The translations under genes were made by a program, and so were the position numbers. From Histomonas meleagridis 2922-C6/04-290x (Eukaryota > Protista > Parabasalia): 64,000 nt of DNA. Positions 3,829-26,599 of this stretch are shown in pieces. How positions within the stretch are numbered: position 1 is the stretch's first letter; each line of letters starts with the position of its first letter. The DNA lies in contig JAANOX010000221.1 in the NCBI GenBank assembly GCA_020184695.1, forward strand, positions 1 through 64,000. Direction: 5' to 3'. Below the pieces are notes generated by a model. The model searched no databases and was not told where the DNA came from. It saw nothing but the letters and a program-made list of their open reading frames with translations.

Positions 3829-6800
3829 AAGATTTTACAACAGTTTCATTAATATTGAAACCAAAATTGCACTCATTTTCAAAATTGAACCAACAACAGA
3901 GGCTTCATTACCAGGCACAATGTTAGCTGATGGGCTTCCAGCCTGTGTTGGATATCTATATTAGTTGCTGCATACAATTATATTTCAGCACAGAACATTT
4001 GGGAGAGGTTTCTGTTTTCGTTCAGCTCCTGCAAATATTTTTAAAGATTAGTCTCGTGTGTCGTTAATTCATTGTTTATTGTTAAATAATATATTATTAA
4101 CATATAATGTGTAATGTAATGTTATGGAAAATAAATTGAAAGACGAAGTTCATACTGGTTACTTGTGGTTGGCTAACGAAATTATCATGTATAAATACAA
4201 ATATGATAAAAGTATATGATAACAAAGTAATTATAATAAATAAGAAATAGGACAGCATGGGTCATATTAAAGAGTTAACATACAGTCATCATAATAGGAT
4301 ACAACAAATTGGCTCACATTCATTTCAAAATACGACATTTATCACCACTGCGATAAATAATGACAGGTATGTAATGCAGTAAAATATTCTACTGAATCCT
4401 CTGAAAAATCTTTATGGGTCGATATTTTTTACTTTATCATACTCAGATATTTGTTATTCAGTTTATGTCAAATTGTAAGGTTCATTTGTCATTGTCAGGA
4501 AGAGATGATCCAACAGTAACGAGGTTCGTCATTATTACATCTCAGTGCCGACATCTTCACGTTAACTATTTGGGGTGTTTCTACGATATTCTTTATTAAA
4601 TATGTCACTGTAGATATATTCTACAAAATTTATCAAGAAATATTAAATCCTGAATATATTCTTCTTAATTTAGAATTTTCGAACATTTTTTTGGAGTCAT
4701 TGCTGGCTTGAAGTATCGGTCACATGTTTCATTGCTTTTCAAGAGAGATGATATCACGGTATAAGTTGTAATAAATCTGTCTATTATACCTAAATTATTT
4801 ATGAGCTTTTTATCAGTATTATATGAACAATAACACATAAATCATATATATTATTTTCTACAAACTATTTTCATCAGAAGTTATTTGACGATATTTATCA
4901 TCAAATTGTTTTAAAAGAATCATTTTCCAGCAATCTTGCGCCATAGAAGATAAGTTTGTTCTCGAATTTTCTTTTCAGTTATCTATTAATGAAATGGAAG
5001 TCGAATATGAAGGTATTTTGTTAAAGCCGTTATTGAACAAAGGTATAAAAGACAGACAACGAATTAAAATCGAAGAATATAACATAATCCGAAAATGAGG
5101 ACATGAACCAAACAAAGCGTATCATCAGAATAAGATTACAAAAAAGAAGTGAATATAAAGATAATAATGAACTGTAAATATATTACACATCATACCATGA
5201 AGAATAAATTAATAACAAGGAGCACCTCACAAAATGTTACTTGAAAGAAGTTAATTCTGACTATAGTATTTTAATGTCTTCATAATGGATGTCATATAAT
5301 ATATTATTGGGGTTTAACTAACCTTTATAACAATTTATGAAATACCACTTTCTTTTATCTTATTATATGTGTTTTGCATCATCAACCTAATGTAATGAAA
5401 TATTGAAATTTAGAATAATGAGAGAATGTGTTGATGCACTTGCTAATATACTTGAGTATGTTATTTCACAGCAATGGAGTTGAAAATAAACGAAAAGTTA
5501 CGCCTCACGCCGATGAGAGCAGATCAGATTTAGATAATTCATATTTGTAACAGAAATGACACACTACTTTTGTGATTCAGTTTAAAAATATTATATATTG
5601 AATAGGTCAGATGATCAGTATAGAATTTATAAAATACTGATAAAATACAATATAATACTAGCTGGATGGCTTACGTTTTAACAGTTTTATTCGAAAGCTT
5701 AAGGCCGGAAATATGGTTGGCCAGAGCATTACAGTCATGACTTGATTCTCGGTGTTTACCAGATCTTTCAGTAATACTGTCAGCACAATATTGCTGTGTA
5801 TTTCTTCACAATTCCAAGTTATATCTATTATTATTTAATATTAGATATTCTACTGGGGCTGGTAAATATCACATAGTTATCAAAATTCCATGTAGCGTGA
5901 TAGAGAAACTATTAGCAAAGTAAAGTGCTCGAAAGAGATGTTTATGTGACGGCGTTTCGAAATAGCACGAACACAGCATAAACAATTGGAAGGAACAGAA
6001 CTCAGGGTATATTTTCGTGCCATGCATGCCCCACTGGGTGTCATCCAGGCAATGAACGGTAAACGATTGATTATAAATGGTTGGTCCGAAAGTAATTAAA
6101 CATTTTATATCATGATGACATTTACTTTAAATGTGTGGCATGACAAACACCACCACTGCACCAATTCATTCAATAAAAGGAATGGAAAGTCATTTTGATT
6201 TCCGAGGCATGCTTACTGGAGCTTCGACAACGGAGGTTAATGCATGTGCAGAAAGGTTTTGGTTGTGCAAAGTACCTTACTTCTTCAAAGGCGATGCAAC
6301 TTTTGTTCTCAGGCAGGTCACGCTGAAAGGATATCCAAAGCTGACTGTTGATATCGAGCATTCACAGCTTGATGTTACCTAAGGTGGAAGTCAGGCCTGG
6401 AAGCTAAAGCTGTGCCATTAACCGAAAGGTCTCTTGGCTTAAAAATCAAAGGCCTCTTAACCTCAACGAAATCGGGAGAAACAGTTTTGAGATTTAACGC
6501 AAAGGACAAAAAATAAATTATTTAAAACTGTTCATCTCGTAGCTTTGAATTTTGACATAAAGTGTAAAACTTGAATTATTAGTAATCTCTGCCAGAGATA
6601 TAACTGTGCTTATATCATAACAGATTGTACTTTCTGAATTTAATAATGTTCCAAAACGCATCTGTTTTGTCATCATAATAATAATCTTCATTTGATATTA
6701 TTACATTGACAACACTCAGATGTTTTTTATTTTTCTCGATTGACACCAACGGAGATTTGAACGCATTGTTGGACGTATCATCAGGATTATATCGTATTGG

Positions 6801-8184
6801 GCTTAAGAATTTCATAATCGGTAATGAAATTTCACATCATGCTTCCCGATGGTATATGAGCCACATCCATACTTGATTTGGGAACACAAGTTTTCAACTC
6901 ACAGCTTTAGTTAGAAATAAAATAAATGTTGAAATAGCTTTAATTTTTTATTTCAGTCATCCGAAAAATGCCAATTTACTCTGCCTGAAGAGGGTCTGTG
7001 TGGTTTCCATTTTTGATGTGACTTTTTGATGAATATTTTGAGGGTCGCTTTTTTGTGTGTCACACATGTTTATTGAGCTTGAGGGTTTTTACAAATTTTC
7101 AAGGACATTTCCTGAAAATTGCATAACAGTTTTTCATCACATGTCAGTTGATGAAAAATTACGCTCTGATCTTGCTTAGGCCAACGGACGGGAGAAATGA
7201 CGGCTGAACAAATCGCTGCAGCCAGGCATTTCAAAATTTTCACACTCAAACGGAAATTAATAAAATGGCTGAAGTTGTACTGTGCGCTTGAATCACGAAG
7301 TGTGGCAAATTTTTCGAATTGCCAGCAAAACGATTAACAACTGAATAGGTACTGAAAATGAATTTCCAATGAGTTCCGTTTCAGCAGCGTCTGTGACGCT
7401 GACGCAAGTCACGTATTATTTTCCAGCTGTAAAAGTAAGTATTGAATATTTACACGAAAAATTTCGGCGGTAATGAACGTTAATAAATTATACTGGCGGT
7501 AATGAGCCTGATCTATAGCCGAAATTGAATGATGCGTTAATGTCAAACGTACCTTGAATCGTCACACTTGGGCAAAATATTGATGATTCTTATGACGGTG
7601 TTTACATATGATAAACGTTGCTGGAACGTTGAGTTGAACGTTAAGGTAGAAATAAAATAAAATTAATAGGCAGAACGAATGTTATCACAACAGACTGTGG
7701 ACCTGTAAGGCGTTCATTGGTGCGACTGACATTGAAATTAAAGATCCATGCTGATACTGATTACATATCAAACGCCCTATTGCCTGTATTTTGGAAATGT
7801 TGTTCTTTCCTCTATCAAATCCTTTTCAGTTATATTTGATTACCAGCGTACGCAGATATACTTAGCTTTTCTTGTGCCATCGTCTGCTTTTGTGCTTCTC
7901 GTCATTTTCGGCTTCCATAAATCTATTATTTAATTCGCAGGAGCACAAGTTTTCTTTCTCCAGTTTGAGTGCCTGAACTTTAAATTTACCGATTCAAGAA
8001 GTTTTAGCTCTCTTATCATTATGAAGTATGTTTGTTTGTTGTCACCCATTCCTCACGCTGTATTATGATTATATTTATACCGACAGTGGCGTAATTTTAT
8101 TGAGTATTTTGATATTAACATCTTTTGAATGAACTATTTATTAACGGTAAAATTTACTTATAAATGTAAATACCAGGTAATCCA

Positions 8185-8900
8185 GATGAGACAGGAAGAT
8201 TGCTTGATAAATTAGAAAATAGAACAAAAGAGCTTTAGAAATGCCAAGATAAAACCTACTACAAAAATTTTACTAAAATTACCAAGCGAGAAGCCGATAG
8301 TTAGGCAAATCATATCTTTGATGTTAAATTTGAAAGAAACAAGAAGTACATTTAATCCATAACCGTTTCGAATTAATAACTGACTAGGTAATAATTCAAA
8401 ATTTGATGAAATAAAAGAAAACGAAACTTGCTGCATAAAGATACTGATTTAGACTGGATTGAAAGAATTTTAAAATATACTTATCATCAAATATATCAAT
8501 TCTGGGGATTTAAGAAAGATGAAATACTCTGAATAATTAAAGAAGAATAAAATACATTTTTGAGTTATGAAATAATAATGGAAAATTTATTCATGATGAG
8601 AGCTGCTTCAGCTGATATTGGGACATTTTGCAACACCTTTACTGGCAGGGCAAGAAATGGAGATGTCAACATTGCTTCAAAACTGCACACGTTAACGTTG
8701 TCATTTGTGTGTAAACAACAGCAATACTGTGCAAGAACTTTGTCAGATACGTTTACTGAATTGACAGCAAGACTTTTCGGGATTCGTTGTTACTTGACGC
8801 AAAGTTTGCAAAAAGAACAGGGCAAAAATGAAAGACACTACACGGCCCACACAGCACGAGGTTAATACAATCAAAAGGAAAGAATCTAAGATTCGAATAC
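8185..8900 (+). pseudogene. Mirror (degenerate) copy of the packaging ATPase gene
   Basis: ORF 8560-8865 (..KLHTLTLSFVCKQ..RTLSD..) parallels KLRHFNINVIICVQ..KRTLSD of 12961-13401; lies in the fold-back arm. Confidence 0.75.
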
Positions 8901-10729
8901 TCATGTAATATTTTGATTTGACCACCAACAAATAAATTATCATATCGAAATTTGATTCAGTAATGCGCTTCGTGATATGCTTCGTCATCTCGTATATGTG
9001 ACAAATCGTGACTTATGTCAATTTTCAAAATGATTTTGACATAATTGAATTTCGTTGAAAAGATTACAGAACGATTTTTGAAATAAGACAGAGCTCGTTT
9101 GACATAAGAATCTTTTTCAACATTTGGACAAAAAGATATTGACTGGAGCTGATAAAAGAGCTTCCGACTGATTCAGCAAATACTAAATGGTCTGTACCAC
9201 AAATGTTGATGGTGGTAGAAAGAATTTCCAGAGAGTAACCTCGATATCTGAATTATATTATATGAAGAGTATTGTGCGTTATTTGAAGAAGTGTCGATTA
9301 GACGCCCTTTTGAATTAAAGAAATTCAACAGTAATATAAACGTTCAGAAAGTTTATCATTATTGAAATAGTATTTTTTAACATAATTTGGGCAACATCTT
9401 CTCAATAACAAGCCAGCCAACGATGCGCCATCATTTTTCTGATGTAGTTGGTGCGGTGATGTATCAATTTGCTGTGGCTGCTCAAGCGTCGGGAGAAATT
9501 AACAATTACTGCATTATACATTTTATGGAATGTGTAATTTCATGAAAACATATATACCAAGGTTGTAACAAAAGCCAATCTTCAGCCGGCAAACATGCAT
9601 TTAGCCAACCCAAGTGAGGCCTCGATTCCCGGCGAGACTACCAGTTGAGGCTCGTGGTTGAAAACACCCTGAAAATTGTGCTGTACTTTCATGACTGTCC
9701 CGACACACCAAAAACTGGTCATGATTAATCCCCCACCGTCATCCTTGCGTTAAATCCTCAAAGCTCGCTTTTCTCCGCTTTTCAGGTTGTGTTGTTGGGG
9801 GCATCATCGTGCATCGGTACTTTTTTAACATTTTTAACATATCTTTTAACATAGCTTTAACATTTTAATTTATGCAAAATGCTTTATTGGTGCTTGGGAT
9901 GTGTGTTATTGAACATTTACGTTTAAATTCAATCGTAATAATGACAAAAATATATGTATTTAAGAGGAAGAAATCTCGAAGATATTGTGCTAACACTCTA
10001 TCAGAATTACATCATTTAACACAACCTGCATATTTCGGATAAATATTTTTTACCGCTTGCCAGCCCACGTTAAATGCCAGAGTTGGCGCATCGTTGGCTT
10101 TTCGATAAAATCACCCGACGTTAATGAATGTCTTCTTTCGTGAAATGAAAGGCTTAGGGCTCTAAGTCATTTCTTGTTCTTTAAATATTGATGAAAGTTA
10201 TTACTTCAGTTTGTTGACAGTCAACTCGAGATTTTTTTTTTGATTGTTGATTTTTTAATGATACATCATGATTGCGACATATTATAGCTTGGGGCGACGG
10301 TCTGAAACCATTCATACCATAACTTCAACAATGATTAAACTATCATACTGACGTTAAAATTCTTCAAATATATTTTGAATTTCACGATACGTGATTGTGG
10401 GTGAAGCACCACTGACTTCAGTTACTCAAACTGCACGAGAAAACGCAGAGGTCGGCGTTATATCTACCTTCTTATGCCAATAGTTTAGTTTCGCGATGGA
10501 CAATCAATTGAGGATGATCAACATTTCAGCCTGACACATACTCATCTAATTCCATGCAGTTACAAATTGACTGCTTCATACAGCTTATCTGTTAAAATAA
10601 CAATTATTGTTTGAAAATTTGAGGTTATAAAGAGCATTACTGTATACAACACTGTTTTTATTCATTAATGCTCTTACTATATTTTCAATTTTTTCAAACT
10701 GTGAATTTGACATTTTTAATAAGATAAAA

Positions 10730-11550
10730 ATGTATAAAACTGAAAATCAATTTACAACAACTGCGTCTCAGTTACCGATTGAAGAAAATTATACAAATCT
10801 TGATTTAGATAAGTATGAAGTATTAAATCCTCAAAATGGTTATACTTTCCGTTATCCTCAACGTTGGTTAGAGTCTCCGTCACAGAATAAAGCTATTGGC
10901 ATAAGAAGATTAGATATAACGCCGACCGCTCACGTTTTCTCATTACAGTTTGAAGTAACTAAACCTGAAAGCGTCAGTGGTTCTTCACCTAATCCACGTA
11001 TCATTAAAATTCAAGTTATGGCGCAAAATACTTTATTTGAAATTTTAACGTCAATTTTGTAATAGTTTTAATAATTCATTTGCGAGTTATAGATTATCTT
11101 ATGAATACGAAGACTCAGGCAATTTATATTTTGCTTGTACTTATGTAGGCTCGGATGAAAGCCAAAATCTTGTCGCAAAATTCGCGATTGTTGATTCAGG
11201 AAGTACTACATCTAATTTAGAAAGTTTTTTTGAAATTCTTAAATCAAGATGTAACGTCAGAAAGTATAAGTTATTTGTCAACTCAAACGGAAGTAATGAC
11301 TTTTAATAATGTTTGGAACAGAGAGTATTTAGAATTTCATGCTTCATTTAGTGATTCGAAGAGACGATTCATTGGCATCAAAGGTGATTTTTATGAAAAA
11401 CCAACGGTATTATATAACGCGCCAACTGATGGCTCAACATTTAACATTAGATTTACAACAAACGGTAAAAATAATATTTATCCGAAATATTGCAGGTTTA
11501 TTATTCAATTAGTATTTCTTTATAATTACAGAAAAACTGTTGTACTTTAA
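10730..11550 (+). pseudogene. Maverick conserved beta-rich ORF (possibly structural), split by two +1 T homopolymer frameshifts
   Basis: ORFs 10730-11062 and 11230-11550 join into one frame if one T is removed at ~11,056 (ATTTTGT) and one at ~11,228 (T7 run). YTFRYPQRW..NKAIGIRR resembles a recurring trichomonad Maverick ORF (recollection, not searched). Confidence 0.6.
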
Positions 11551-11749
11551 GAGTAAAGTGACCTTTTAATATCTTCAGGGATTTCTTTTTTATCTCCTTC
11601 CTCTTCGTTAAATACAACATATATTTTTATCATTGTATTTACGATTGAATTTAAAACGTAAATGGTTCCAATAACACACATCCAAACACCAATAAAAAAC
11701 ATTTTACATAAATTAAAATGTTAAAAAAGTATGTTAAAAAAGTAAAAAA

Positions 11750-12140
11750 GTACCATTAAAATTTTCAAAGGTGATTTTTTAACCTTTTTTTTTAACCCTT
11801 TACGAAACGGAGAAAATGAGCATTTTTTGAAGGATTTAACGCAAAAGTTGACGGTTGATATATCGGTAAGAGTTTGTTGTTAATCCTATGTGGATTTTAG
11901 TGTTTGGAGCTTAAAGTTGTTATTAACTGAGGTTTTGAATGTAAAAAGTACCTTTTAATTTTCAAAGGTGATTTTTTAACCCTTTTTTTGAACCCTCAAC
12001 GAATCCGAGTCTCGCCAGGGCTCGAACCTCACTAGGTTCGGTAAATTAGCGTTTTTCGGGTGATCTGACGTGAATATTGCATGTTTGCTCGAGTTACTGA
12101 AAGGTTAACTTTTTGTGATTTTTTAACCCTTGAATTTTTT
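11750..12140. repeat. Maverick intergenic repeat module
   Basis: AAAGGTGATTTTTTAACC..AACCCT..ACGAA..CGG block occurs twice (~11,768 and ~11,965). An inverted near-copy is at 16,190-16,560 and related blocks are at ~15,470 and 30,040-30,190. Confidence 0.8.
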
Positions 12141-12175
12141 ATATATGTTTTTCATAAATTTTTACAATATATAAA

Positions 12176-12934
12176 ATGTATAATGCAGTAATTGATTATA
12201 CAATTTCTTCCTACGACGCTGAACATTACAATAGAATTGACGTAAACTTACCGTCACCGCCAAAACGTAAAGAAAAAATGATTGTAACATCGTTAACGAC
12301 TAAATGTTCTATTGTTGTTATTGAGAAAGATGATTTTATACAGATTAATGGTAAAAAATACTATTTCAATAATGATTACACTGACTTAAACTCACAAACG
12401 TTTATATTACTGTTGAATTTCTTAATTCAAGAATCAGGCGTTACGTCTGAAGTCGACGAAGCCGGTAGAATTGTATTTACTTCTTCAAATGCCTTTACAA
12501 TAAATAATGCTTCATATAATATAATTCAAATATCAGGGTTATACTCACAAATTCTTCCTATACCATCAACATTTAATGGTACAGATACATTTGAAATATT
12601 TGCTGAATCAGTCGGAAATACTTTATCAACTCCAGTATTATATCTTTTGTCAAATGTTGGAAAAAGTTCTTATAGAAATTTAAACGAAACCATTAACATT
12701 TCAAAAATCGTTCTTAGAATCAATAACTCTTTTTCGGCAAATTTTCCGATTATTGTATCAAACGTCGATTTTGAAATTGACATAAATTCTAATGATTTGT
12801 CACATATACAGTTGACACTCGTTGACGCAAACCTTCACGAAGTACATTTACTGAATCCAATGTATATAACAATTTCTGTTCAAGGAATGCCAGATGAAGA
12901 TTTATTTGTTGGTGAGATTCAAAATCAAAAATAA
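12176..12934 (+). CDS. Maverick minor capsid (penton-like, single jelly-roll) protein
   Basis: Intact 252-aa beta-rich ORF. C-terminal STPVLYLLSN..LRINNSFSANFPII..LTLVDANLHEVHLLNPMYITISV pattern is typical of trichomonad Polinton penton-like proteins; lies next to the ATPase. Confidence 0.65.
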   Translation: MYNAVIDYTISSYDAEHYNRIDVNLPSPPKRKEKMIVTSLTTKCSIVVIEKDDFIQINGKKYYFNNDYTDLNSQTFILLLNFLIQESGVTSEVDEAGRIVFTSSNAFTINNASYNIIQISGLYSQILPIPSTFNGTDTFEIFAESVGNTLSTPVLYLLSNVGKSSYRNLNETINISKIVLRINNSFSANFPIIVSNVDFEIDINSNDLSHIQLTLVDANLHEVHLLNPMYITISVQGMPDEDLFVGEIQNQK

Positions 12935-12960
12935 TTTTTATGAAACATTGTTTCCGAATC

Positions 12961-13861
12961 TTAAGATTCTTTCATTTTTTGATTTATAATAACTCTTCGT
13001 GCTTTAATGTGAATACTAAACGTACCGTGTGGGTCTTTCATTTTGCTATATTCTTTCCATAAAGCTTTTGCGTCAAAAACACTCGCTGGTGATTCCTTCA
13101 ACAGATCGAAAAAGTCTTCTTGTCCAATTCCATTAAATAATACAATATCTGACAAAGTTCTTTTTATATCTTTTGGTATACTTTTTGTTGTTTGCACACA
13201 AATGATAACGTTAATATTAAAGTGTCTGAGTTTTTTAAGTAATCTTGACATCTCCGTTTCTTTACTTCTCAGTAAAGGATGATTAGCAAAATCATCTAAT
13301 ATCAACAAACATCTATGCGGATAAGTTTTCCATTGATATTTCGCTAACTTTTCAGAAATGTATTTTAATTTCTTCTTTGAATTATTCAAATTATATTTCA
13401 TAAATAATCTTTCTACTTCTTCATCCGTTTTCTTAAAATCAGAATTGATATATTTAATGATAGAATTATATTTTAAAAATTCTCCGAATATATTTATTAA
13501 TCCAGTCTAACAAATCAGTATCTTTTATCGCAACAAGTTTCGTTTTCTTTATTGCTTCTTTATAAGTATTTACTGTTTCATCAAATTTTGAGGATGTACT
13601 ACAAATAGTTATTAATTCAAAAAACGGTTCGTTAAATAATACTTCTTGTTTCGCTCCGAGTTTAACGTAAAGATATGATTTGCCTGAACCCATCGGCGCT
13701 ATAAAAGCTGTTATTCCGTTTTGAGCAAATAAAAATTTTTCATGAATGGGTTTTATCTTAGCATTTTCTAAAATTTCTTTGTTCTGTTTTTCTAATTTAT
13801 CAAACAATTCTTCTATCTCATCAAATTTTTTATCTATATTCTCCGAATTATTTTTTCGCAT
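12961..13861 (-). pseudogene. Maverick DNA-packaging ATPase (A32/FtsK-HerA family), one +1 frameshift
   Basis: Walker A APMGSGKS in ORF 13466-13861 and Walker B LLILDDF in ORF 12961-13401. Removing one base in the homopolymer at ~13,476-13,481 gives RRILKYNSIIKY and a single ORF of ~300 codons. Confidence 0.9.
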
Positions 13862-13901
13862 TATTTTTTATTTATAAAAATAAATTTTTTACCGTTAATA
13901 A

Positions 13902-14363
13902 ATGGATTCATTCCAAGATTATTTAATATCAGAATATAAAATAAATTACGCCGCTGTTGATTTTAAATATAATCATAATACAACAGTGAAGATAGACAAA
14001 CCAACAAATAAACCTATACTTCATAATAATATTCTTGTCGGCGTTAAATTTTATGATAAGAATTTAAAACTTCTTGAATCAGTAAATTTAAAGTTTACCG
14101 ATAACATTCTTACTAAAACAAATGAAAAGAAACTTGTAAATATTGCTCCTGCAGAATTAAATAATAAATTTATGGAAGCCAGAAATGATATTGTCAAGAA
14201 AATCACAAACGAACTTGTTGAGAAACGTGAAGAAATCGATAATAGAATTATATCATTAAATGCATATATTGGTAATCAAAATATAGCAATTTCAAAAGAG
14301 TTTGAAGGAGAAAAAATAACGTTTCCGGAAAATACAAACAATAAGAAATCGTTTGATATGTAA
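13902..14363 (+). CDS. Maverick hypothetical protein (153 aa)
   Basis: Intact ORF divergent from the ATPase inside element A; no motif recognised. Confidence 0.6.
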   Translation: MDSFQDYLISEYKINYAAVDFKYNHNTTVKIDKPTNKPILHNNILVGVKFYDKNLKLLESVNLKFTDNILTKTNEKKLVNIAPAELNNKFMEARNDIVKKITNELVEKREEIDNRIISLNAYIGNQNIAISKEFEGEKITFPENTNNKKSFDM

Positions 14364-14399
14364 ATCATGTGAAAATGACTATCATATAACGAGATAAAT

Positions 14400-15590
14400 T
14401 TATTTTAAAATTTCAATGTCAGTTTTTCACTTTTTCAATGAACGCCTTACGTTCGATTCCCGTACAGTGCGTTTTTTGTTAATGTCTTACGTTCGATTCC
14501 CAAACCTATTGAATTTTATTTTTGAACTTACTCGTTCTACCTTAACGTTCAACTCTAACGTTCTTCCTTAACGTTCGACTCTAACGTTCTTCCTTAACGT
14601 TCACTTTATCCTTCGTCATAAACACCGTCATAAAATTCGTCATCAAATATTTTTTACATTTGCCACTAAATTCAATGACGATTCAAAAAATTTTACGTTT
14701 GACACTAATTGATAGCATCATTCAAATTTACATTTTCAGTACTCATTCAAATCTCATTACTGCCCGCCAATTTCTAATTTATTAACGTTCATTTACCACC
14801 GAAATTTTTTTCATTGTAAAATAATTCAATACTTTACTTTTTACAACATTGAAAAAAAAATGCTCCTGTGTCGAGAAACGCGTGTCAGATTTTTTTTTAA
14901 GATTTCAATACTTTTAAAAACTTTTTCAGAACTCATTCAAATTCATTTCCCGCCAATATTTTCAGTACCTATTCAATTATTAATCGTTTTGCCACCAAAT
15001 TAAATGACAATTCAAAAAATTTTACATTTGCCACTAAATTAAATGATAATTCAAAATATTTTTTACAACAACTTCAACCGTCATTTTCTCCGTCCGTTAA
15101 TTTCCGTTAAATTTTAAACAGAAAACGTTTAAAAAAAATTTTTTGAAATCCGTTAAAAAAAGTTTATTTTTTACAACTTACTTATTCAGCGGTTGTTCAA
15201 ATTTATCAACCGTCATTTTCTCCGTCCGTTTATTTTGCGTAAACGGATTTTATCAAGAACGTTAATTTTTCATCAACTGACATGTGATATGAAATGAAAA
15301 AACATGTTATGCGAAATGAATTTTTCGGAAATGTTATGAAAAGACATGTTATTTGAAATTGTAAAAAAGTGGTTCCATAAAAAATTCAATAGTGCTGTAT
15401 CTCGAACCAACGACCTTTACAAAAGTGACACCAAAAGTGACACAAAATTTCTGAGGGTTAAAAAAATAAAAAAGTGAACCCTTTTTTTGAACCCTCAACG
15501 AAACGAAGTAAATTAACATTTTTCGGATGATTTTACAAAATAAAAAATTAAAGCTAATTTCAAAAAAATTTATTTTTTTATTTCTAATAA
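14400..15590. repeat. Repeat-rich Maverick intergenic region
   Basis: 26-bp unit CCTTAACGTTC(A/G)ACTCTAACGTTCTT x2.5 (14,540-14,604); TTTGCCAC(T/C)AAATT x3; CAACCGTCATTTTCTCCGTCCGTT x2 (~15,076 and ~15,207). Confidence 0.85.
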
Positions 15591-15594
15591 AATA

Positions 15595-16155
15595 ATGAGT
15601 TGGAAAACTTGTGTTCTAAATCGAAATTATGAGATTAACACAGAATACCCTTATGCCATCAGAAGAAAACATGATAAAAAAGTCATTAAAGAATTTTCAA
15701 TTAAAACTACCGGTTATATTGCATGTAAATTAAACAGAAAATTATATCTTAAACATCGTATCATTGCATTACAATTTATTCCAAATCCTGATGACAAGCC
15801 ATTTATCGATCACATAGATCACAACCGTTCCAACAATCACGTTTCAAATCTCCGTTGGGTTTATCAGTCAGAAAATCTAAAAAATAAAAGTTCAGGTAAA
15901 GGAAAAGACTTTGAATTCTTCGACGAAATCAACGAGGATTCAATTGAAGTTAATAAGTATGGCAATCATCAATTAGAAGATTATTATTATGATGATAAAA
16001 CAGATGCGTTTTACTTTTGGAACGGTATTAAATTCAGAAAATTAACAATCTGTTATGATAAGCGCGGTTCTGCTCATGTTTATTGCAGAGATACTAATAA
16101 TTCAAGTTTTGCACTTTATTATTCAAAATTCAAAAAACTTTACGGATTATTATAA
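15595..16155 (+). CDS. HNH endonuclease (HNH_3-like), Maverick-associated
   Basis: KHRIIALQFIPNP..FIDHIDHNRSNNHVSNLRWV..SEN motif; intact 186 aa. Confidence 0.9.
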   Translation: MSWKTCVLNRNYEINTEYPYAIRRKHDKKVIKEFSIKTTGYIACKLNRKLYLKHRIIALQFIPNPDDKPFIDHIDHNRSNNHVSNLRWVYQSENLKNKSSGKGKDFEFFDEINEDSIEVNKYGNHQLEDYYYDDKTDAFYFWNGIKFRKLTICYDKRGSAHVYCRDTNNSSFALYYSKFKKLYGLL

Positions 16156-16655
16156 AACTTAGTTTAAATAATTTATTTTTTTGTCATATTCTTTTTGCGT
16201 TAAATCCTTCAAAAAATGCTTATTTTCTCCGATTCGTTGAGGGTTAAAAAAAAGTGATTTTTTAACCTTTGATTTTTAAAAGGTACTTTTTTGATAAAAA
16301 CCTTCAGTTAATAACAGCTTTAAGCTCCAAACACAACTTTCCACATAGGATTAACATCAAAACACTAAATTCTTTCCGATAAATCAACCGTCAACTTTTG
16401 CGTTAAATCCTTCAAAAAATGCTTATTTTCTCCGTTTCGTTGAGGGTTCAAAAAAAGGGTTAAAAAATCACCTTTGAAAATTAAAAGGTACTTTTTACAT
16501 TCACAACCTCAGTTAATAACAACTTTCCACATAGCATTAACAACAACTCATCCGTTATCATCATCAGCTCCAGTAAACATGCAATATTCACGTCAAATCA
16601 CTAAAATGGAGAAACTCATTCAGCTTTTCCGAATTTCCTTTAGCTAATAACTTTT

Positions 16656-16687
<32 letters not shown>
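16656..16687. repeat. (TTAG)8 microsatellite
   Basis: Directly visible. A shorter inverted counterpart (CTAA)n is at ~30,491 in the second Maverick cluster, in the same sequence context. Confidence 0.95.
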
Positions 16688-16690
<3 letters not shown>

Positions 16691-16872
16691 GTCATGCCAC
16701 ACATTTTAAAAAATAAATGTCATCATGAATTTAAATATATTTAATTACTTTCAATCAAAACCAACCGATTTATGAAAATCAATCGCGTTTACACCGTTCA
16801 TCCTTTAGTTTATGTAGCGCGAGTGGGAGCGAGTGCGTAGCACGAAGCTCACATAGCGCTGTGTGAGTGAGT

Positions 16873-17615
16873 ATAGCATAAGTTATTGTTCCGCTTCCAG
16901 TTGTTTTAATATTACTTTTAACTGATTCATTAATATTTCGGAAACATAGATCACATAAGTAATCTCTTTCAACGACACTTTTTGCTGCTAATAAGGTTTC
17001 TCTATCACATACAGGTGCAATAATCAAATTTTGATAACTAGGCATTAATTCTATTGATAATTTACCAGCCCAATTAGGATAATATCTAATATTAAATAAT
17101 AATAAGATATAACTTAATGGAATTATTGAAGAAATCTTTACAACAATATTATTGCTGACAATTATTACTGAAAGATCACAATAAACACCAGGAATCAAAG
17201 GATCATGATTTCTAATATTATCTATTGTAGCAAAACAATCATTTCCAGCCTTAGCTTTATCAGATAAACTATTATAAAACATAAACCATCCATATCTTGT
17301 ATTATGAATATCTTGTATTTTATCAGTATTACTATAAATTCTATACTGATCAATAGCATCACAAATACATTTATATTCAATATAATATTTTTTAAAAGCT
17401 GAATTGCTTTGAGAAGGAACGTTAATAGTAATTTCTTGTTCTAGAGTAATATATGAATTATCTAAATCAAATATTTGGAAACGATCTGTATATATATCAA
17501 CGTAGGAAGTATCTTTTTCATTTATTTTTCCAACATTCTCCGTAAGATGTTGCTGTAGAATACTTATATTTTCCAGAAATAATTTATGATAGCTTAAGTG
17601 CTTTATCAACTGCAT
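16873..17615 (-). pseudogene. Maverick major capsid protein, N-terminal half (element B), truncated by the end of element A
   Basis: DLDNSYITL..YYIEYK..DAIDQYRIY..IPGVY..FNIRYYPNWAGKLSIELMPS resembles the double-jelly-roll MCP N-half. The frame runs into element A's terminus after ..TITYAI; the true start is probably upstream (~17,780) but disrupted. Confidence 0.7.
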
Positions 17616-18249
17616 TATACCAGTATTCTAAATTTCCGCTAATGACATCTATTACATTAGGTTGTTGATTTTGAGGTGCAAACACATATATAAGATAAAA
17701 AAGTGAATTATTTCATAAATTGTTATAAAGTTGGATTAAGCCCTTGTAAATAATATATTATATGACATCCATTATGAGATATATTAAAATACTATAATCA
17801 GAATTAAGATTATTAATTTTCTTTTATCAAATAACATTTTCTTGAATGCTTCCTTGTTATTAATTTGCTTCTTCTTCACCAATTTCATTAATATCATCTT
17901 TTAATGATGTTAATTGATACTCTATTTTTAGTTCATTATTATCTTTTAGATATTCACTTCTTTTTTGCATTCTATCTATTGTCATTCTTTTTGAATTATT
18001 CTGATGTCTAACTTTGACTAATTCAAATAATCCTGTTCCACCAACATATCTTTTTTTTCAGATTATGTTATTTTTTTTTATTATCTAATTCTATATTCTT
18101 CGATTTTAATTCATTAATCTGTCTTTTTATACCACTTTGTTCAATAGCAGCTTGTAGATTCTGTATATTCATTTCCATTTCATTAATAGATGCTAGAAGA
18201 AAAATTCGAATTTTGCTGTCGCTTATCTTCTATGAAATAAGATTGCTAG

Positions 18250-19080
18250 AGAAATTAATGGTTCTTTAAAACAATTTATTGATAAATATCATCCTATTAA
18301 ATTAACTTCTGATGAAGAACCAGGTTTTGTAGAAAAGAATAATATGAAATTATTATATGATTATAATGTTAGTGTTCATATAATTACTGTTAAAAACCAT
18401 AGTAGTTTAGGTATAATAGATAGATTTATTATAACTATACGTGATATAAATACTCTTACAGGAAACAGTAAACATGAATTTTTTAATGAAAAGTATACAT
18501 ATATAACACTCAAAAGAATGAATAGATCTATCAATATATATAATAATTGTTATTATACTTCAATAATAATGACTCCAAAAGAAATGTTCGAAAATTCTAA
18601 ATTAAAGAAAGAATATATATTCAAATCAGTGAAAACTAAGAAAGAACAATCAAAATCAAAGGATTTAATACTCTTGATAAATTTTTTTGTAAGATATGTA
18701 TCACCACGAGATGATATATTTAATAAAAAAAATATCGTATTAGTAGAGAAGCACTAAAAATAGATTAACGTGAAGGTTATATGTCGACACTAATTGCCAG
18801 AGATGGTAATGTAATAATTGAACCTCGTTTTCAATTAATTTTTGTTGGATCATCTCTTCCTGATAATATTAAATGGGCTTATACGATACATTATAAATGG
18901 AATGGCGTTATTACAAAAATATCTAATTATAATAAAAGTAAAAATCGTTATAAAGTTTTTTCAAAGTTCCATCAGTAGAACCTTTTACTACTGATTACAT
19001 ACCTGTCGATTATTTATCACGAGCATATAGACCTGGTGATAAGAGTAATCTCGATAGAGAATATTTTGGGGAGAAATAAT
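18250..19080 (+). pseudogene. Maverick retroviral-type (rve) integrase, degraded
   Basis: KYHPIKLTSDEE, NHSSLGIIDRF, YNNCYYTSIIMTPKEMF and C-terminal TLIARDG..PRF..IKWA..WNG motifs across ORFs 18344-18757 and 18781-18978; stops and frameshifts. Confidence 0.85.
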
Positions 19081-19686
19081 GAATGTGAATTAATTTGTTA
19101 ATACATCTATTATGATGACTTCTTAATGATAACTTCTTTAATATGATTACTTCTTTATTATATTTCTTATTTATTATAATTACTTTATTATCATATATAC
19201 TTTTTTATCATATTTATTATTTATACATGATGTTTCGTTGTAATACAAGTAATACATTATGAACTTCATTATAAATTCACTTTCAATAGCAGTTTATTTT
19301 TACATAACATTACATTACACATTACATATGTTAATAATATATTATTTAACAATAAACAATGAATTAACGGCCTCTACGAGGCCTATTAAAAGATATTTTT
19401 TAAAAAGTAATATTTGCACAGGGCCCTGAGGCGAAACCGTAAGGGGGGCCTGTAGATGTTCTGTGTGTGTGTACGAATACCATTATCATAATTCTTATTA
19501 TTATTCAATATGAGATATTATCCCAACTGGGCTGGAAAATTATCAATAGTATTAATGCCTAGTAATCAAAATTTGGTTATAGTTTCGATTGTTGATATGT
19601 CTAAAGTTCCAGCTACAGTTTTAGAAAATGATTATAATATAGATTTTGGTTTCAGAAATATTAATGAAACTGTTAATAAAATCTTA

Positions 19687-20971
19687 TAGGGTGTTCGGTT
19701 ATTTCGCGCAATTTTTATGAATATGAGATTTTAATTAAAATTAGTAGTGATTTATTATTAATCATCGATGAAATAGGATCCATCATGTTCGAAAACCCAT
19801 TTGCAACGATTTGCCCATTCATCAAAAACTTTCACTTACATTTCGTGTGGAATCGCTTGAACAATTTCATTGATTGCTTCATAAAGTTCAAATCTTATCT
19901 TAAATCTTTGACCTCTGAGTTTTTCTATTACGTAGCCAAAAAAGAAGAAATCAGATGGTGCAACATCAGGTAAAAACGGGGGATGAGGTGCTCTCTTGAA
20001 GCAGGTATTTTGGATTTTGTTTTGGTCATGTTTGAGTTGTGCACACTTGCATTGTCAATATGCAACCATATCTTTTTGCGGCCGGAATTAGGCCAAATAT
20101 TGTTTTTTTTTTCATGCAATGGAATTATAATATTATCAATAAAATAATTATTATCCATTGTTGTGTTTTTTGGGAGTTCATCTATTATAATATATATTCC
20201 CCAAACTCCCCAAACAATTGTAATCATCATTTTTTCACGACAAATGAGTCCGGACTCAAAAAGTGGATGAGTTTCACTATCTATTGTCCATGCTCCTTTT
20301 GGTGCATAATTATAAAGGAACCATGACTCATATTCAGTTATCAAATCACGATAAGAATTCTTCTTACTCTTAATGATAACTTGATAAAGCTCTTGGCATA
20401 AACGGATCTTTTTCACTTTCTGATCGTCAGATAAAATGTGCGGAACCCACCTTGTATAACGAAATACTAAACCAAGGTAATCTGTCATATAATGATAGAC
20501 AGTAGAAATTGGAGCATTTAGAGTGTGCGCAATGCTTCGGACAAAAGAAAATCGATTTTTATGGTGTTCTGCTTGAATACGGAACAAAAGTTATTCATCT
20601 ATAGGTCTACCAGGTCTATATGGTTTCTCATCAACTCTAAAATTTAATTTGACCATTCTGATCCATTTATACATTGCTGAGTCCTTTAACGCACTCTCGC
20701 CGAACTTCTTGTTTAATTTTTTTCTTATTTTCTTTGTCCAGAGCCCTTTTTTAACGAGTTCTTCAATGAAAAGAAGCTGTTCCATATGCTTAACGTACCA
20801 TTTTTAACATACAAAAAAATATTGTTATGGTTAAATTTCAATTTCTTAATGGATAATTTCAACATTAACCATATCAGTAAAAAGCTATTTAAAAATACTT
20901 TTAAATTTTATATAGTGTTTAGTGATTTAATATTTATATATTTTTTTTGCACGAATTAACCGAACACCCTA
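19687..20971 (-). mobile_element. Tc1/mariner DNA transposon, 1,285 bp
   Basis: 25-bp TIRs TAGGGTGTTCGGTTA(T/A)TTCG(C/T)GCAA with 2 mismatches; flanking TA at 19,685-86 and 20,972-73. Confidence 0.95.
19758..20785 (-). pseudogene. Mariner transposase, inactivated
   Basis: WVPHIL, HIDNA and PHPPF.PDVAPSDFF motifs. In-frame TAA at 20,591-93, frameshift near 20,010, and first catalytic Asp context mutated (TEYESW versus TGDESW). Confidence 0.92.
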
Positions 20972-22085
20972 TAATAAAACAACAATCGTTATATCACAAA
21001 CATTCAAATGTAATACTCAAACTACCAAGATGTTAAGATTAAGCTAGCAGAATATATGTTAAAAATAGATATATTTAATGCATTAGCCGTTAAATATGTG
21101 ATAACACCATTACTATTTCCAATACATATATGTGAAATGAGAGATTTCACACAACCATTATCGAAAAATACTGATTTAGATACTGCTGCTACGATAGGTG
21201 TTAGACATCGTGATATATTGTTCAGAGTATGTAGAATAAATCAATATAGTAGAACATGCTTTATTCCACAACTTGAATATCGATTTAATATTGATGTAAA
21301 ATGTATCCAAGAGAATAATATGAAACTATCATTGATTCTAAACATCTGAATACATTAGATTCATTAAATTTAAATGGTAGTTTATTAAGTAGTATAAATA
21401 ATGATATTAAAAACTTCATTACAACCATATTATTTTTGATATGTATATGATGATGATAGTTCGACAATAACAAAACAACAAGTTTGGCATGGTAAAGATA
21501 ATAGTAATTTCTTAGTTGGTTTACCATTTGCTGAGGGTGAATATTTTCAAGGTGGTATATCTACAACTGGCACTGTTCAAAAAGAATTACATGGTAATAG
21601 AATACCCAGTAGTAAAGGTACTAGCAGGCATTTTGAATATGGATTTCATATCACCAGTTGGCATATATTTCGAAGATGCTATATTAAAAATTCGTTCAAT
21701 GAAGCCAGATGGTAGATCACAAATAGAAATTACAAGCATTAGCGTTGTGTTTAGATATTATTGAAAATAATCCATAAATAGTGAATAAATATATTATTGC
21801 TGATGAAAATGAATTAATAAAATTAATACAATTTATAACAGATACTAATAATATAGAATTATTAAAAGCAGATACTGATAGTTATTGTTGTAAAAGTAAT
21901 ACTTATGATTATGTTAGTAAAATATATGTTAAAAAAAATGAAACTTATAATTAAAAATATACCTATCCAGATGTCATAGAATTTCTTGATAAACGGCATA
22001 TCATTTAAGATTTGTAAAATCTACAAGGTTAACATATAAACATTAATTTTATATAAAATATTAATATATTATTTTTATATTTTTA

Positions 22086-22337
22086 TTGTTAAATAAAATA
22101 ATAAATTTTACAATGATATATATTTTATTATTATCAACAATATACATAATAAATTATACATTGGAAACATTATGTTATATTCATTATTGTGAAGGCAAAA
22201 AACCTGTAAATATCAAAATTAATAATGTTGATCATTCTGATTATAATGTTAGTGATAATGATGCCGCTGGCAATAGTCCGCTTATGAATGAAATGAATAA
22301 TGATATACCAAAAATATGTAGAAATTTGTATTGTTAA
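22086..22337 (+). CDS. Small ORF with N-terminal hydrophobic segment, inside Maverick C
   Basis: 83 aa, IYILLLSTIYII hydrophobic stretch; no recognised domain. Confidence 0.3.
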   Translation: MLNKIINFTMIYILLLSTIYIINYTLETLCYIHYCEGKKPVNIKINNVDHSDYNVSDNDAAGNSPLMNEMNNDIPKICRNLYC

Positions 22338-23859
22338 AAAAACACTGTATTAACATATATTTTTATCGTAATATTGTGTGTATTTCGAAAGAACGATGTT
22401 TTTGGTTATTTTTATCGTAATATTATTGTGTGCAGGATGTGCATTATTAGAATGGGGGTTTGAAATTTCATTAAAATACTTTGTTTTAGCTTTTAGCTTT
22501 TTTCCCAATAATTTGATGTGAATTTTTATGTCAACAAAAAAGTGTGTCAAAGCTTTGTGGAATAAGATATGTTTATATGTGTGATTTGTATATAAGTTTT
22601 GTTGTAAATTATATGTTTGATTTACAAAATGCTTAACAAAATTTTTCGTTTTAGCAATCTATATATTGCTTGCTTGCGAAACACACCACAAAGAAATGGT
22701 GCTACGAAGTAGCACAAATGGAATTGTGCTGTGTGTGTGTCATATATGTAAAACACGACCATTATCATTCGAAATTTTCGAACCCCACGAGTGAAGTCCA
22801 TGTTAATGTTTAGTTAATTTTTCATTCAAAAAGTTCTGCATTTTTTAGCGATTTTCCGAATAATTTTAATCATTTAAAATCACTCTTTTACATTCATTCA
22901 TTATATTATTTAAAAGTGTCTTATTAATTATTGAGTTCACCAACTTTAAATGTGTTTTTAAATATTGAAACAATATGTTTTAAGGTTAAATTGAAAAACT
23001 TCAATTAAACATCAAGTTTTTTATATGTTAACCGTGTGATTTTCAACTTTTGTATTGACCGATGTTTATTAGCAAAGGTCTTCAACTATGTTAGGTCTTA
23101 AAACATGAAAATCCTTCATTTACTGCTCATTTCGAACATTGTGAAGCAATTTAGAACGATGTAATCCCAGGAATTCCATTTTATACCACTATAAAATATC
23201 AAATATGAAAAAATCATAAACAAAGAAGGACACACTCATGCACACAATGTCTAAGATCCAATCTTCCAAATTAATAACGAAAATTTTGCTATATTTAATA
23301 AGAATTTTACTTTCTTCAAAACCTGTATGTTTTTTTAATTTTCTTGACTGGCAATAAGTTCGCATTAGTAATGCTTCAAGTTTTAAAGGATAAAATCAAA
23401 TTCCAAGCTGGGAATCATCATGTTTTACAAATACACAAATTAAATCCTTTATACCCAGAATCTTTGTTGAAAACAACACAACAACCAATGTTGAATAGGT
23501 GTTATGGCAATATATCTTTGGTCCAGTCGAAATTTTATGCTTTTTCATTGATGCACTTCAAAACGACAAAACAGACCAACCAATTAAATTCAATATTTGA
23601 ACATGTTCATTTAACCGTCTTTTTTCAATGAAATTTCTGTTTGTAAAAACGAAATTTCAAATTTTCTTCAGCACAACACAGAATGTTTTCGAGCAACTAT
23701 GAATTGAAAAGAAAAGATAAGAAAATACAAAAAAAAATTATATTTAAAATATAATGAAATTTTTAAATAACAGTGACGGAATTTATGAAATTCCAAAGAA
23801 TTTATTTACAGAATAGTCATCAGTTATTTATATTAATTTTAGTATAATTATATGTCAAG

Positions 23860-24230
23860 CATATGGAACAGTGTGTTTCCAATTTTTTTTTAACTAGAAA
23901 CGATTATCTTTAGAGAAAATGGTATAACAATTGGCAGTTTAGCATTTTCATCATGTTTATTAATCAAAAGCATTACAAACTCAATTTTAACAATTAACAG
24001 TTATGCATATTTATCATGTTTGAATTTAAAAATATTAACACATGGGAACGGAATAACAAGTATTGGACATTCAGAATTTGTTATTAACTTGAATGCATTT
24101 ATTATTATGGGAACAATGAACCAAATAATCTTTTTTAATGTAACAACAACAGTTATCACATATTCAACATATGAAAGCACGAAATTTGGAATTTTAAATG
24201 TTAACAAATCATATGATGATGAATGAAACT
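23860..24230 (+). pseudogene. BspA-like leucine-rich repeat remnant
   Basis: Translates ..ENGITIGSLAFSSCLLIKSI..TINSYAYLSCLNLKIL..NGITSIGHSEF, i.e. BspA/LRR_5-type xxIGxxAFxxCxxL repeats; no intact long ORF. Confidence 0.5.
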
Positions 24231-24835
24231 GCAAACCATTTACTACATTGTCATTTTCAGCATTATATACACTCAGTTGAAGTAATCCATTTTAAAACAA
24301 ACGCATTTATTTACTATATGCGTTCACTCGCCAGTGTTATGAAAAAATTTTTTCCCTATATTGCCAATACCACCATTGTTTTGTATGTTTCCAATAATTA
24401 TCAATTTACATTGGTAATTTTTTTTGAAAACATTAATGTTAACACATTGCTAAGGCTAGAAAAAAAATTAAAAAAATTTCATCTTGGATAAAGAATGGAT
24501 GTAAAAATGTGAACAACATGTTATTCAAATTACTTTTTTGAACCATTGTTCGACTAGATCCAAAGCAATATCCGTGTATCGAAATTATAAAATACAACAT
24601 CCATTTTGGTGCAGTTTAACTATTTGTACACTTTTCGATCGGTTTTGATGTTATCATGTTCAAAAAGTGAAACCGATACAACAGATTTTTACAGTTGTAA
24701 AGAAATGACGATTAAACCGCCATAATCAAGACAAAATTGTGTCTTTTTTACGAACCTGAATTTCAATTGTTACGATTATTTGCAATTGAAGCAAGCTATT
24801 AGCCGTTTTTCTGTTTTTCAATACCTAAGAACCAA

Positions 24836-25975
24836 ATGAGACCAAACAAAAATCATCGCTACAACAACAAATGTTTGTTTTTAATACAAAGGAACAACCA
24901 CCTATTCATCATTGGATTAATATTGGTCAATTTTTTATACGCATTTATTGCAAACATATTTTATGAACCAAATCCAAACGTAGTATTAAGAACTGCAGGC
25001 AATTTGGACATTGACGTAGTTTATACCTGGGTTAATGGCACTGATCCTCATTGGCAACATATTAAATCCCTAAAAGAAAAGGAGTATAATGTAACAATCA
25101 AAAAAAATGTTAATGCAGGTCGTTTCATCGACTTTGAAGAAATAAGGTATTCTCTTCGTAGTGTTTTCAAGAATATTCCATGGGTTCACAAGGTATATAT
25201 AATCACCGACAACCAAACCATTTCATATCTTTCTGAAGATCCTCGGATTGTTTATGTCGACCACAGGACCATCTTCCCCCCAGATGCCTTGCCAACGTAC
25301 AATTCTAATGCAATAGAATTCTGCATCATGAACATCCCTGGTTTATCAAATCAATTTCTTTATGCGAATGATGATTTCTTTTTTGCGCGGCCCAGCACCA
25401 AAGACGTTTTCTTTGAACCTAATGGTAATCCAAAGATACCGACTCACAAATCTAAATGGCCAAATGCCACCAAAAGTTTCAAAGAGATGTCAAAGTCCAA
25501 ATATCGCGACAATTTTGGTGCTCAACAATACAATACTGTTCTCAAGCGGACAGCGTCCGTTTTTGAAACAAAGATTGGGCGTGATGCACATGGCTCAGCG
25601 CCGCATAGCATATTCCCATGTTCGTTGAAGCTTTGTCGTAAGGCATATGAAATCTTTGGAAAAGAAATTGATGAAGTACGACATCATCATTTTCGTTCAT
25701 ATACTGATATGCTTTTCCAACTGCTGATGGTATTTACATGTGATCTAGATCCTTCGTTATGTACAAAAACTTCCCCGTCCGGTTATGCAAGATTCTTGCA
25801 ATTACACGGAAAGAAAGAAAATTCACCATTCAAAGATTTCGATCCTTCAAAGGTCGTAACTTTTTGCGTTAACTCAGACTCGGCGACAACAGACGAATTA
25901 AGACTGATTGCTAAAGAATGGTTAGAAAATTGGATGAATGAGCCTTTAAGCATCGAAAAAGATCGAAAGAAATAA
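24836..25975 (+). CDS. Stealth-family hexose-1-phosphate transferase, type II membrane protein
   Basis: CR1 IDVVYTWVNGTDPHW; CR2 EIRYSLRSV..PWVHKVYIITDNQ..LPTYNSNAIE..IPGLSNQFLYANDDFFF; CR4 FCVNS; N-terminal TM helix. Confidence 0.93.
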   Translation: MRPNKNHRYNNKCLFLIQRNNHLFIIGLILVNFLYAFIANIFYEPNPNVVLRTAGNLDIDVVYTWVNGTDPHWQHIKSLKEKEYNVTIKKNVNAGRFIDFEEIRYSLRSVFKNIPWVHKVYIITDNQTISYLSEDPRIVYVDHRTIFPPDALPTYNSNAIEFCIMNIPGLSNQFLYANDDFFFARPSTKDVFFEPNGNPKIPTHKSKWPNATKSFKEMSKSKYRDNFGAQQYNTVLKRTASVFETKIGRDAHGSAPHSIFPCSLKLCRKAYEIFGKEIDEVRHHHFRSYTDMLFQLLMVFTCDLDPSLCTKTSPSGYARFLQLHGKKENSPFKDFDPSKVVTFCVNSDSATTDELRLIAKEWLENWMNEPLSIEKDRKK

Positions 25976-26389
25976 TAAATCAAATAGAGAAAAATGCCAT
26001 TAAAACGAAAGAAATAAACATTTTAGAATTTTTTTATCATTCAAGTTTTGAATAAAAAACAAAGTTCAGCAGTTGTTTCTATAAATATGACATAGCTTTT
26101 TGAGTACAATTTAATTGTTTCGACAATGGAAATTGAAATATGAAATGTTAACAAAACTACAAGCCATTATGTAGAAATAAATAATTAATATATGATGAAT
26201 ACTTTACGAGAGATTACAAAGATGTAATGTTAAAAAGCATCATTTCTCATAAATAAAACTTTTAATAGGCCCTGGGCAAAAAAAATATCCCAAATTAGCA
26301 ACATTACTATATTACTTCATGTTTTTTTCAAATCTTTTGGTATCGATTTAACAGTCTGAACACAAAATTAGTTGAGAGGCTTTAAAAGT

Positions 26390-26570: not shown

Positions 26571-26599
26571 AATAGAAAGAATTCTTATAAGTGATTCAA

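Follow-up and report, generated by a model that had tools for sequence, protein, structure and literature searches.

Right-hand ends of three Maverick-like endogenous viruses, probably nested, at a contig edge of the poultry parasite Histomonas meleagridis

Introduction

How did the right-hand tips of three Maverick-like elements come to stand one behind another in the same orientation, the first two set directly against an interrupted major capsid protein (MCP) gene? The arrangement occurs in Histomonas meleagridis, a parabasalid parasite of poultry, on contig JAANOX010000221.1. We analyzed positions 1–64,000 of this contig (hereafter the window), which was placed by an exact match to a host protein. 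A reading made from the sequence alone (hereafter the sequence-only reading) had proposed a nest of three elements, here called A, B, and C, with A inserted into the capsid gene of B and B into that of C, and had set its start at 10,653; the authentic sequence begins slightly earlier, at 10,636. Our analysis indicates that 10,636–22,740 is probably the right-hand edge of three stacked endogenous Maverick-like viruses, one nested within the other. At the window locus, we infer this nest from right ends, which are the element ends that the authentic sequence contains.

The H. meleagridis genome paper describes two assemblies (JAANOX and WSYJ), representing two strains from one cell, which were obtained by assembling Nanopore 1D reads with Flye and polishing with Illumina reads via racon. 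The same paper reports a G+C content of 28%, few introns, and DNA transposons amounting to just 0.22%, and does not mention Mavericks. Annotated MCP genes and gene fragments number about a dozen per assembly. For comparison with the window, nine loci in the sister assembly (WSYJ) were reached through the intact MCPs P0181 and P0187 and the members of their clusters. The sampling of loci is MCP-centered, and the window itself was picked for its cut MCPs.

Element tips and the cut capsid genes

The three elements and their capsid genes occupy the window as follows.

10,636–16,872, plus strand: element A, the right-hand 6.2 kb of a Maverick-like element of about 23 kb (collinear with the copy on WSYJ01000164.1, hereafter contig 164)
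16,873–19,472, plus strand: element B, right-hand 2.6 kb (N-terminal half of an MCP gene, divergent integrase, and tip; 99.75% in the sister assembly)
16,873–17,685, minus strand: B MCP gene, N-terminal half, about 270 of about 540 codons (tblastn and BLASTP against P0181, 74%)
19,473–22,740, plus strand: element C, right-hand 3.3 kb (C-terminal two-thirds of an MCP gene, gene remnant, and tip)
19,473–21,800, plus strand: C MCP gene, broken (tblastn against P0003, P0181, and P0187)

Direct reading of the sequence revealed three plus-strand element tips, ending at 16,872, 19,472, and 22,740, in agreement with the sequence-only reading. About a dozen bases inside its end, each tip contains an imperfect G+C-rich hairpin (fold z-scores of about −2), and a GT run comes after it. 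The motif CTGTGTGWGTG is common to all three and has no match elsewhere in the 64 kb window (3 observed against 0.66 expected; 2 of 100 shuffles reached 3). Beyond this 11-nt GT-rich motif, the tips share little sequence. In 237 kb of H. meleagridis sequence, we counted 11 (GT)n or (AC)n runs with n ≥ 5, and all 11 were located at element edges.

The tip of A is proven to be a true element end. Six sister-assembly loci contain other A-family left ends, each starting with the mirror-image run, (AC)6–8, and continuing with the reverse complement of the A subterminal sequence, in flanks that are all different and unrelated; the 73 subterminal nt of A are identical to four of these copies. The complete contig-164 copy, in which both ends are present, provides further support. 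The tip of C is backed by one independent copy, a C-like left end at about position 934 of locus L013, in which an AC run is followed by the reverse complement of the C end and homology stops exactly at the tip. For B, no second copy of the tip was found, and the support comes from the hallmark of the family, a GT run at the element edge, as in the 11 runs counted above and, in the form of a hairpin and GTGT, at the scaffold end of a metagenomic relative described below. Since the six A-family left ends and the C-like left end all start with an AC run, the GT runs are true tips; the concern raised with the sequence-only reading, that such blocks might prove internal in intact copies, was not borne out.

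Both cut genes that had been noticed from the letters alone were confirmed as MCP genes. A minus-strand MCP gene, represented by its N-terminal half, lies immediately right of 16,872, and its similarity to an intact H. meleagridis MCP (74% identity in protein) collapses at the junction. Right of 19,472, a plus-strand MCP gene starts mid-gene, no more than 1–2 bases from the junction; a small piece of this C gene is 62% identical in protein to the intact MCP. The earlier estimate that the two cut sites lie about 70 codons apart requires correction: mapped on the intact paralogue, both pieces cover the same stretch of about 85 codons. Within this overlap they differ by about 40% in protein, which indicates that the B and C pieces come from two different genes. 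The junctions of B and C are identical in the assembly of the sister strain, and their presence in both assemblies shows that they are not artefacts.

Identity of the capsid protein

A search of a representative-protein library with the B half-gene retrieved 73 cluster representatives at an expectation value (E) ≤ 0.001, the full-length ones measuring about 545–560 aa. None of these relatives has a Pfam or PHROG family, and a sequence search of the PDB with the MCP profile gave no match. An AlphaFold model of the closest full-length relative had a predicted local distance difference test score (pLDDT) of 84.8, and its top Foldseek matches were the MCPs of Sputnik, mavirus, PBCV-1, iridovirus, and PRD1 (E about 1e-13). 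On the strength of this model, the family is predicted to adopt the double jelly-roll fold.

Metagenomes contain hundreds of close relatives of this MCP and of the polymerase-like protein of the A family described below. One 17.5 kb metagenome scaffold (L004) encodes a related MCP and an A32 ATPase, and its positions 17,300–17,542 consist of CTCTCACAAGGGG repeats, a hairpin, and a terminal GTGT. This scaffold end suggests that genomes bearing such tips also exist in free linear form.

Element A and its family

Two further features belong to the authentic part of A.

12,961–13,861, minus strand: A32/FtsK-type packaging ATPase of A (Pfam Pox_A32; tblastn)
14,296–16,872, plus strand: long right terminal inverted repeat (TIR) of A (inverted match to L008 3,615–5,803, 91–94%)

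Window positions 10,636–16,872 align collinearly, at 90–97% identity, to the final 5.7 kb of the complete A-family copy (23.1 kb) in WSYJ01000164.1, and the left cut of A is a limit of the assembly rather than biology. Two differences separate the window A from the contig-164 copy: the window A has one more repeat unit, of 200 nt, and it alone of the two contains an HNH endonuclease cassette. Compared with other A-family copies, A is 90–99% identical. Pfam Pox_A32 matched window 12,961–13,401 (E 2.6e-9), and the homologue in L007 matched too. The ATPase gene of A is spread over two open reading frames (ORFs) and contains one frameshift or more, which could stem from an error in assembly; with the contig-164 query, tblastn returned three pieces in two frames. 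The right TIR contains a (TTAG)8 microsatellite and, at 15,565–16,192, the HNH cassette, whose ORF (15,595–16,155) matches Pfam HNH_3 (E 1.4e-10).

The HNH_3 cassette is not at the same place in the contig-164 copy, and related genes are found at L008:12,667–13,230 and at window 29,198–29,626. HNH genes at such differing positions suggest a cassette that moves about within the elements. A unit of about 200 nt is also repeated, in both orientations and varying copy number, at 11,745–12,135, 15,456–15,546, and 16,193–16,526 in A and at 29,958–30,196 in a second Maverick remnant further downstream.

Across the A family, the ends match each other in inverted orientation for up to about 2.2 kb. An rve integrase adjoins the left end (Pfam rve, 34 bits against a cut-off of 32.6, E 3.7e-8, L006:6,567–7,058), the capsid gene lies about 6 kb from the left end, and the A32-type ATPase gene is near the right end; a DUF3839 protein is also encoded. 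For a 761-aa A-family protein without Pfam match, a 76%-identical relative was modeled (pLDDT 75), and the top 50 matches of the model were all B-family polymerases, at E of about 1e-5 and with low template-modeling (TM) scores of 0.2–0.26. The model suggests that this protein may have the fold of a B-family DNA polymerase. Among about 40 ORFs scanned with Pfam, whose sequences are very divergent, no protease family was found, and Pfam and PHROGs scans of most element ORFs gave no match. With its MCP, ATPase, rve integrase, putative polymerase fold, and long TIRs, the A family has a gene set of the Maverick/Polinton type, and we refer to it as Maverick-like. None of the six fetched A-family left ends is the partner of the A in this window.

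Elements B and C

Two further features lie in elements B and C.

18,203–18,960, plus strand: rve-type integrase of B (tblastn with two A-family integrase ORFs, 51–56% identity)
19,686–20,972, minus strand: mariner of 1.29 kb inside the C MCP gene (inverted repeats, TA flanks, decayed transposase)

The B MCP gene is broken by one truncation, caused by A, and by one stop and one frameshift, both near the start of the gene. The B integrase gene contains two stops and one frameshift, its N-terminal part of about 90 codons is undetectable, and it ends about 0.5 kb from the tip. Decay is heavier in the C MCP gene, which is truncated by B, interrupted by the mariner, and further broken by eight in-frame stops and at least one frameshift. 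A remnant at 21,730–21,894 corresponds to the A-family gene downstream of the MCP.

The insertion inside the C MCP gene is bounded by 28-nt inverted repeats (19,684–19,711 and 20,947–20,974; 93% complementary) with TA on both sides. Its transposase ORF matches the transposase domains of SETMAR and Mos1 (E 1e-7 to 6e-3), and its match to Pfam Transposase_1 is weak and below cut-off, the gene being decayed. With short TIRs, a TA duplication, and a DD(E/D)-type transposase, 19,686–20,972 has the sequence features of a Tc1/mariner element and is assigned to that group.

Three other assignments were considered and rejected. The B MCP ends, on the intact paralogue, close to where the C MCP restarts after the mariner, which suggested that B might be the inverted left part of the element of C. 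This was ruled out by the overlap of 70–85 codons, about 40% different in protein, by the tips of B and C, which share just about 15 nt, and by their very different levels of decay. P0251, whose annotation starts where the B MCP stops, was tried as the missing half of B, and its locus proved to be a continuous MCP annotated from an internal Met. Loci L010 and L013 were tried as the left side of the window locus, and were found to have A-family TIRs of another subtype and no adjoining MCP piece. In L013, positions 930–1,760 place the C-like left end about 110 nt from a tipless B-like right-end fragment, with an A-family left end 2.2 kb away.

A complete nest elsewhere in the genome

A nest with both ends of the inner element is present in the sister assembly. 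In WSYJ01000164.1, the 23.1 kb A-family copy lies inside an opposite-strand MCP gene of another element, with the first six-sevenths of the outer gene right of the inner GT tip and its last seventh left of the AC tip. The same 5–6 bases flank both tips, a target-site duplication that repeats about two MCP codons, and the GT tip of the outer element follows 5 kb further on, beside a host PP2C phosphatase gene. This locus demonstrates that integration of a Maverick into a capsid gene, with target duplication, occurs in the H. meleagridis genome.

The cutting of capsid genes has also left a trace in the annotation. GO595_008446 (L011:10,001–11,479, in WSYJ01000164.1), annotated by NCBI as a protein of 492 aa, corresponds to the larger piece of the outer MCP gene and comprises 462 MCP codons followed by a 30-codon read-through into the tip of the inserted element; apart from residue 1, the 30-residue tail exactly matches that of the window ORF 16,779–17,615. 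At least one annotated H. meleagridis "protein" is thus a capsid fragment fused to the read-through of an element tip.

History of the locus

For the window locus, the following history would account for the observations. Element C would have entered host DNA at a site 2.1 kb upstream of a Stealth-family gene. The capsid gene of C would later have received a compact B, and the capsid gene of B a 23 kb A-family element; the mariner would also have inserted into the capsid gene of C. The rve integrase of the elements themselves may have joined the AC/GT-repeat tips to each target and duplicated 5–6 bp of it. We propose that, in a compact, gene-dense genome, old disabled copies could offer safe landing places, so that elements would pile up and decay from the outside in. 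The sequence-only reading had ordered the elements with C as the oldest, B next, and A as the youngest. This order fits the gradient of decay, with the C MCP gene the most broken, that of B nearly open, and A 90–99% identical to its relatives, and is best taken as a likely sequence of events, in which B and C would have their left halves beyond A.

Several observations weigh against this history. No left end, target duplication, or complementary MCP half has been recovered here for A, B, or C. The last 50–140 nt of B are without a second copy; in two B-like subterminal copies (L010 and L013), similarity breaks off short of the tip. The three A-family genes found between integrase and MCP are missing from B, and less than 1 kb separates the tip of C from its MCP gene; B and C could therefore be fragments or deletion derivatives and not whole nested elements. 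Lastly, in the paralogue alignment no more than about a dozen codons separate the cut in the B MCP gene from the mariner site in that of C, a coincidence that a nest does not explain.

In a competing explanation, B and C would be right-end fragments juxtaposed by deletion or recombination among decaying Mavericks, with the A junction as the one clean integration. Jumbles of this kind are seen elsewhere, in the L013 arrangement given above and in a tipless B-like fragment in L010; B and C are unusually short from tip to capsid gene, and the left side of the locus is out of sight. However, both junctions set an intact GT-run tip exactly at the boundary of MCP homology, as integration does and as random breakage rarely would, and a complete nest of the same kind exists in the genome of this species. 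We consider juxtaposed fragments an unlikely origin for the locus, though the strongest of the competing explanations, and we favor successive insertion of B into C and of A into B.

A possible preference for capsid genes

The sequence-only reading had further suggested that Maverick integrases prefer resident capsid genes, or that insertions into them are preferentially kept, as a form of interference between elements. In its favor, three Maverick insertions in MCP genes are known (A into B, B into C, and the one in contig 164), together with the mariner. Of six A-family left ends, which were reached via the MCP of the inner element and are unbiased with respect to their flanks, one lies in an MCP gene; MCP genes make up far less than 1% of the 43 Mb genome, and one in six greatly exceeds what would be expected genome-wide. 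In all three nests, the inner MCP gene is oriented opposite to the outer one. On the other hand, the sample is small, and the window was chosen for the very feature at issue. The insertion points are spread over the gene with no common target motif, five of the six A-family left ends are outside MCP genes, and opposite orientation in three of three cases has p = 0.25. In elements as compact as B and C, moreover, the MCP gene may constitute a third to a half of the available target. Preference or selective retention is, on balance, improbable as an explanation for this locus. Because the sampling was MCP-centered and B and C are compact, we leave the three Maverick hits and one mariner hit as an anecdote, and regard it as doubtful that Mavericks, and perhaps mariners, integrate preferentially into resident Maverick capsid genes. 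If they did, each newcomer would disable particle formation by its predecessor, a built-in competition between endogenous viruses.

The first 10.6 kb of the contig

The part of the window left of A consists of a single feature.

1–10,635, no strand: noisy inverted copy of 10,890–24,473 (self-BLAST, gap profile, position at the contig start)

The left ends, target duplications, and missing MCP halves of A, B, and C had been expected upstream of 10,652. Left of about 10,636, none of these was found, and the same right ends and MCP pieces recur there in mirror image. Self-BLAST revealed that window 227–10,486 is a collinear inverted match to 10,890–24,473 at 65–80% identity, repeating all three junctions with both flanks and, past C, the host flank too. 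Over an alignment of 8,268 columns, the left arm was gapped in 19.8% and the right arm in 1.4%, mismatches made up 10.9%, and stretches of perfect identity alternated with garbled ones. Compared with its partner, the left arm is 24% shorter and has a higher G+C content and almost no ORFs, and it starts at contig base 1, as window position 1 is contig position 1. Homology to the intact A copy in L008 (99.5%) begins at 10,636, with none further left. In the sister assembly, contig WSYJ01000086.1 (628 kb; L002) begins at window position 16,867, six bases inside the A tip, is without a palindrome, and matches the window at 99.75% from there to beyond 35,900.

Fold-back chimeric Nanopore reads produce mirror sequence at the ends of contigs, in which one arm has the quality of a raw read and is strongly biased toward deletions. 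As judged from the assembly, the left arm resembles such reads in all three respects, and its profile of gaps and mismatches points to a poor Nanopore read and not to divergence. Taken together with the position at the contig start, the shortness of the arm, the stop of homology at 10,636, and the sister assembly, this profile indicates that 1–10,635 is most likely a deletion-biased fold-back read artefact that escaped polishing in the public assembly, and not genome sequence. A real palindrome of 24 kb, arising from an ancient inverted duplication of the locus, would account for arms that are collinear over their whole length, host flank included, but is very improbable given gaps 15 times more frequent in the shorter, G+C-richer, almost ORF-free left arm, perfect identity alternating with garbled stretches, a start at base 1 of a contig that Flye assembled from Nanopore reads, and a sister assembly that breaks at the A tip and shows no palindrome; the error profile of the left arm likewise ruled out a giant TIR. 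Evidently, both assemblers failed to cross A, and neither public assembly includes the true left side. Users of this genome should not trust the first 10.6 kb of JAANOX010000221.1.

Neighboring features

Beyond the tip of C, the window continues with host sequence and further repeats.

22,741–24,835, no strand: non-repeated flank between the C tip and the Stealth gene (without match to the fetched Maverick loci)

The host Stealth-family gene (Stealth_CR1/CR2) occupies 24,836–25,975 and is called in both assemblies. A tRNA search found a host tRNA-Phe as its sole hit. Just downstream of the Stealth gene, a second decayed Maverick remnant extends over 26,364–31,811. It includes an integrase tail with four stops (26,364–26,591), an ORF with a weak match to polymerase motifs (26,557–27,066; hhalign E 3e-4), an HNH remnant, 31-nt tandem repeats (29,877–30,003), and a 216-nt inverted repeat of 98% identity (30,887–31,102 and 31,596–31,811). 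Two tandem repeats are unrelated to the nest: a 175-nt AT-rich unit in 2.9 copies at window 32,017–32,526, and a 162-nt unit in 3.4 copies, 90% identical, at window 49,394–49,953, where it lies in overlapping ORFs.

Comparison with known systems

The genome of H. meleagridis contains a population of Maverick-like endogenous viruses, small and well defined, that is absent from its genome paper, with tips that are easily recognized by a hairpin followed by a GT run. In Trichomonas vaginalis, nesting of Mavericks within Mavericks and Mavericks enveloping mariners have already been described (Pritham et al. 2007; PMC12289875), and the stacking of Mavericks seen here is ordinary nesting for this group of parasites. 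The T. vaginalis elements likewise carry an integrase, a B-family polymerase, a packaging ATPase, and TIRs; their MCP was detected later, seeding a 'Metamonada group' in five parabasalid species (PMC12289875). The two species differ in copy number, with about a dozen annotated MCP genes and fragments per assembly in Histomonas and thousands in T. vaginalis. Low copy number and clean tips make the H. meleagridis genome convenient for a census of Maverick landing sites, which the repeat load of T. vaginalis hampers, and the hits in capsid genes are a lead for such a census rather than a result.

Among virophages, mavirus and Sputnik have capsid proteins that are the best structural matches of the Histomonas MCP family; in contrast to these systems, there is no evidence of a giant-virus helper for the Histomonas elements. 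The virophage-Polinton hybrids of the rumen (PMC4409740), whose linear genomes bear TIRs, were found in metagenomes from animal guts, a source shared by the close metagenomic relatives reported here. Rumen virophages lack an integrase (PMC4409740), whereas the Histomonas elements are integrated, with an rve integrase and target-site duplications. Nested insertions of retrotransposons and other mobile elements have also been reported in polinton-like viruses and virophages (PMC12220804, PMC10120064), and there, too, mobile elements disable the genes of endogenous viruses. In Histomonas, by contrast, the intruder is mostly an element of the same kind, and the hits so far have all been in the capsid gene.

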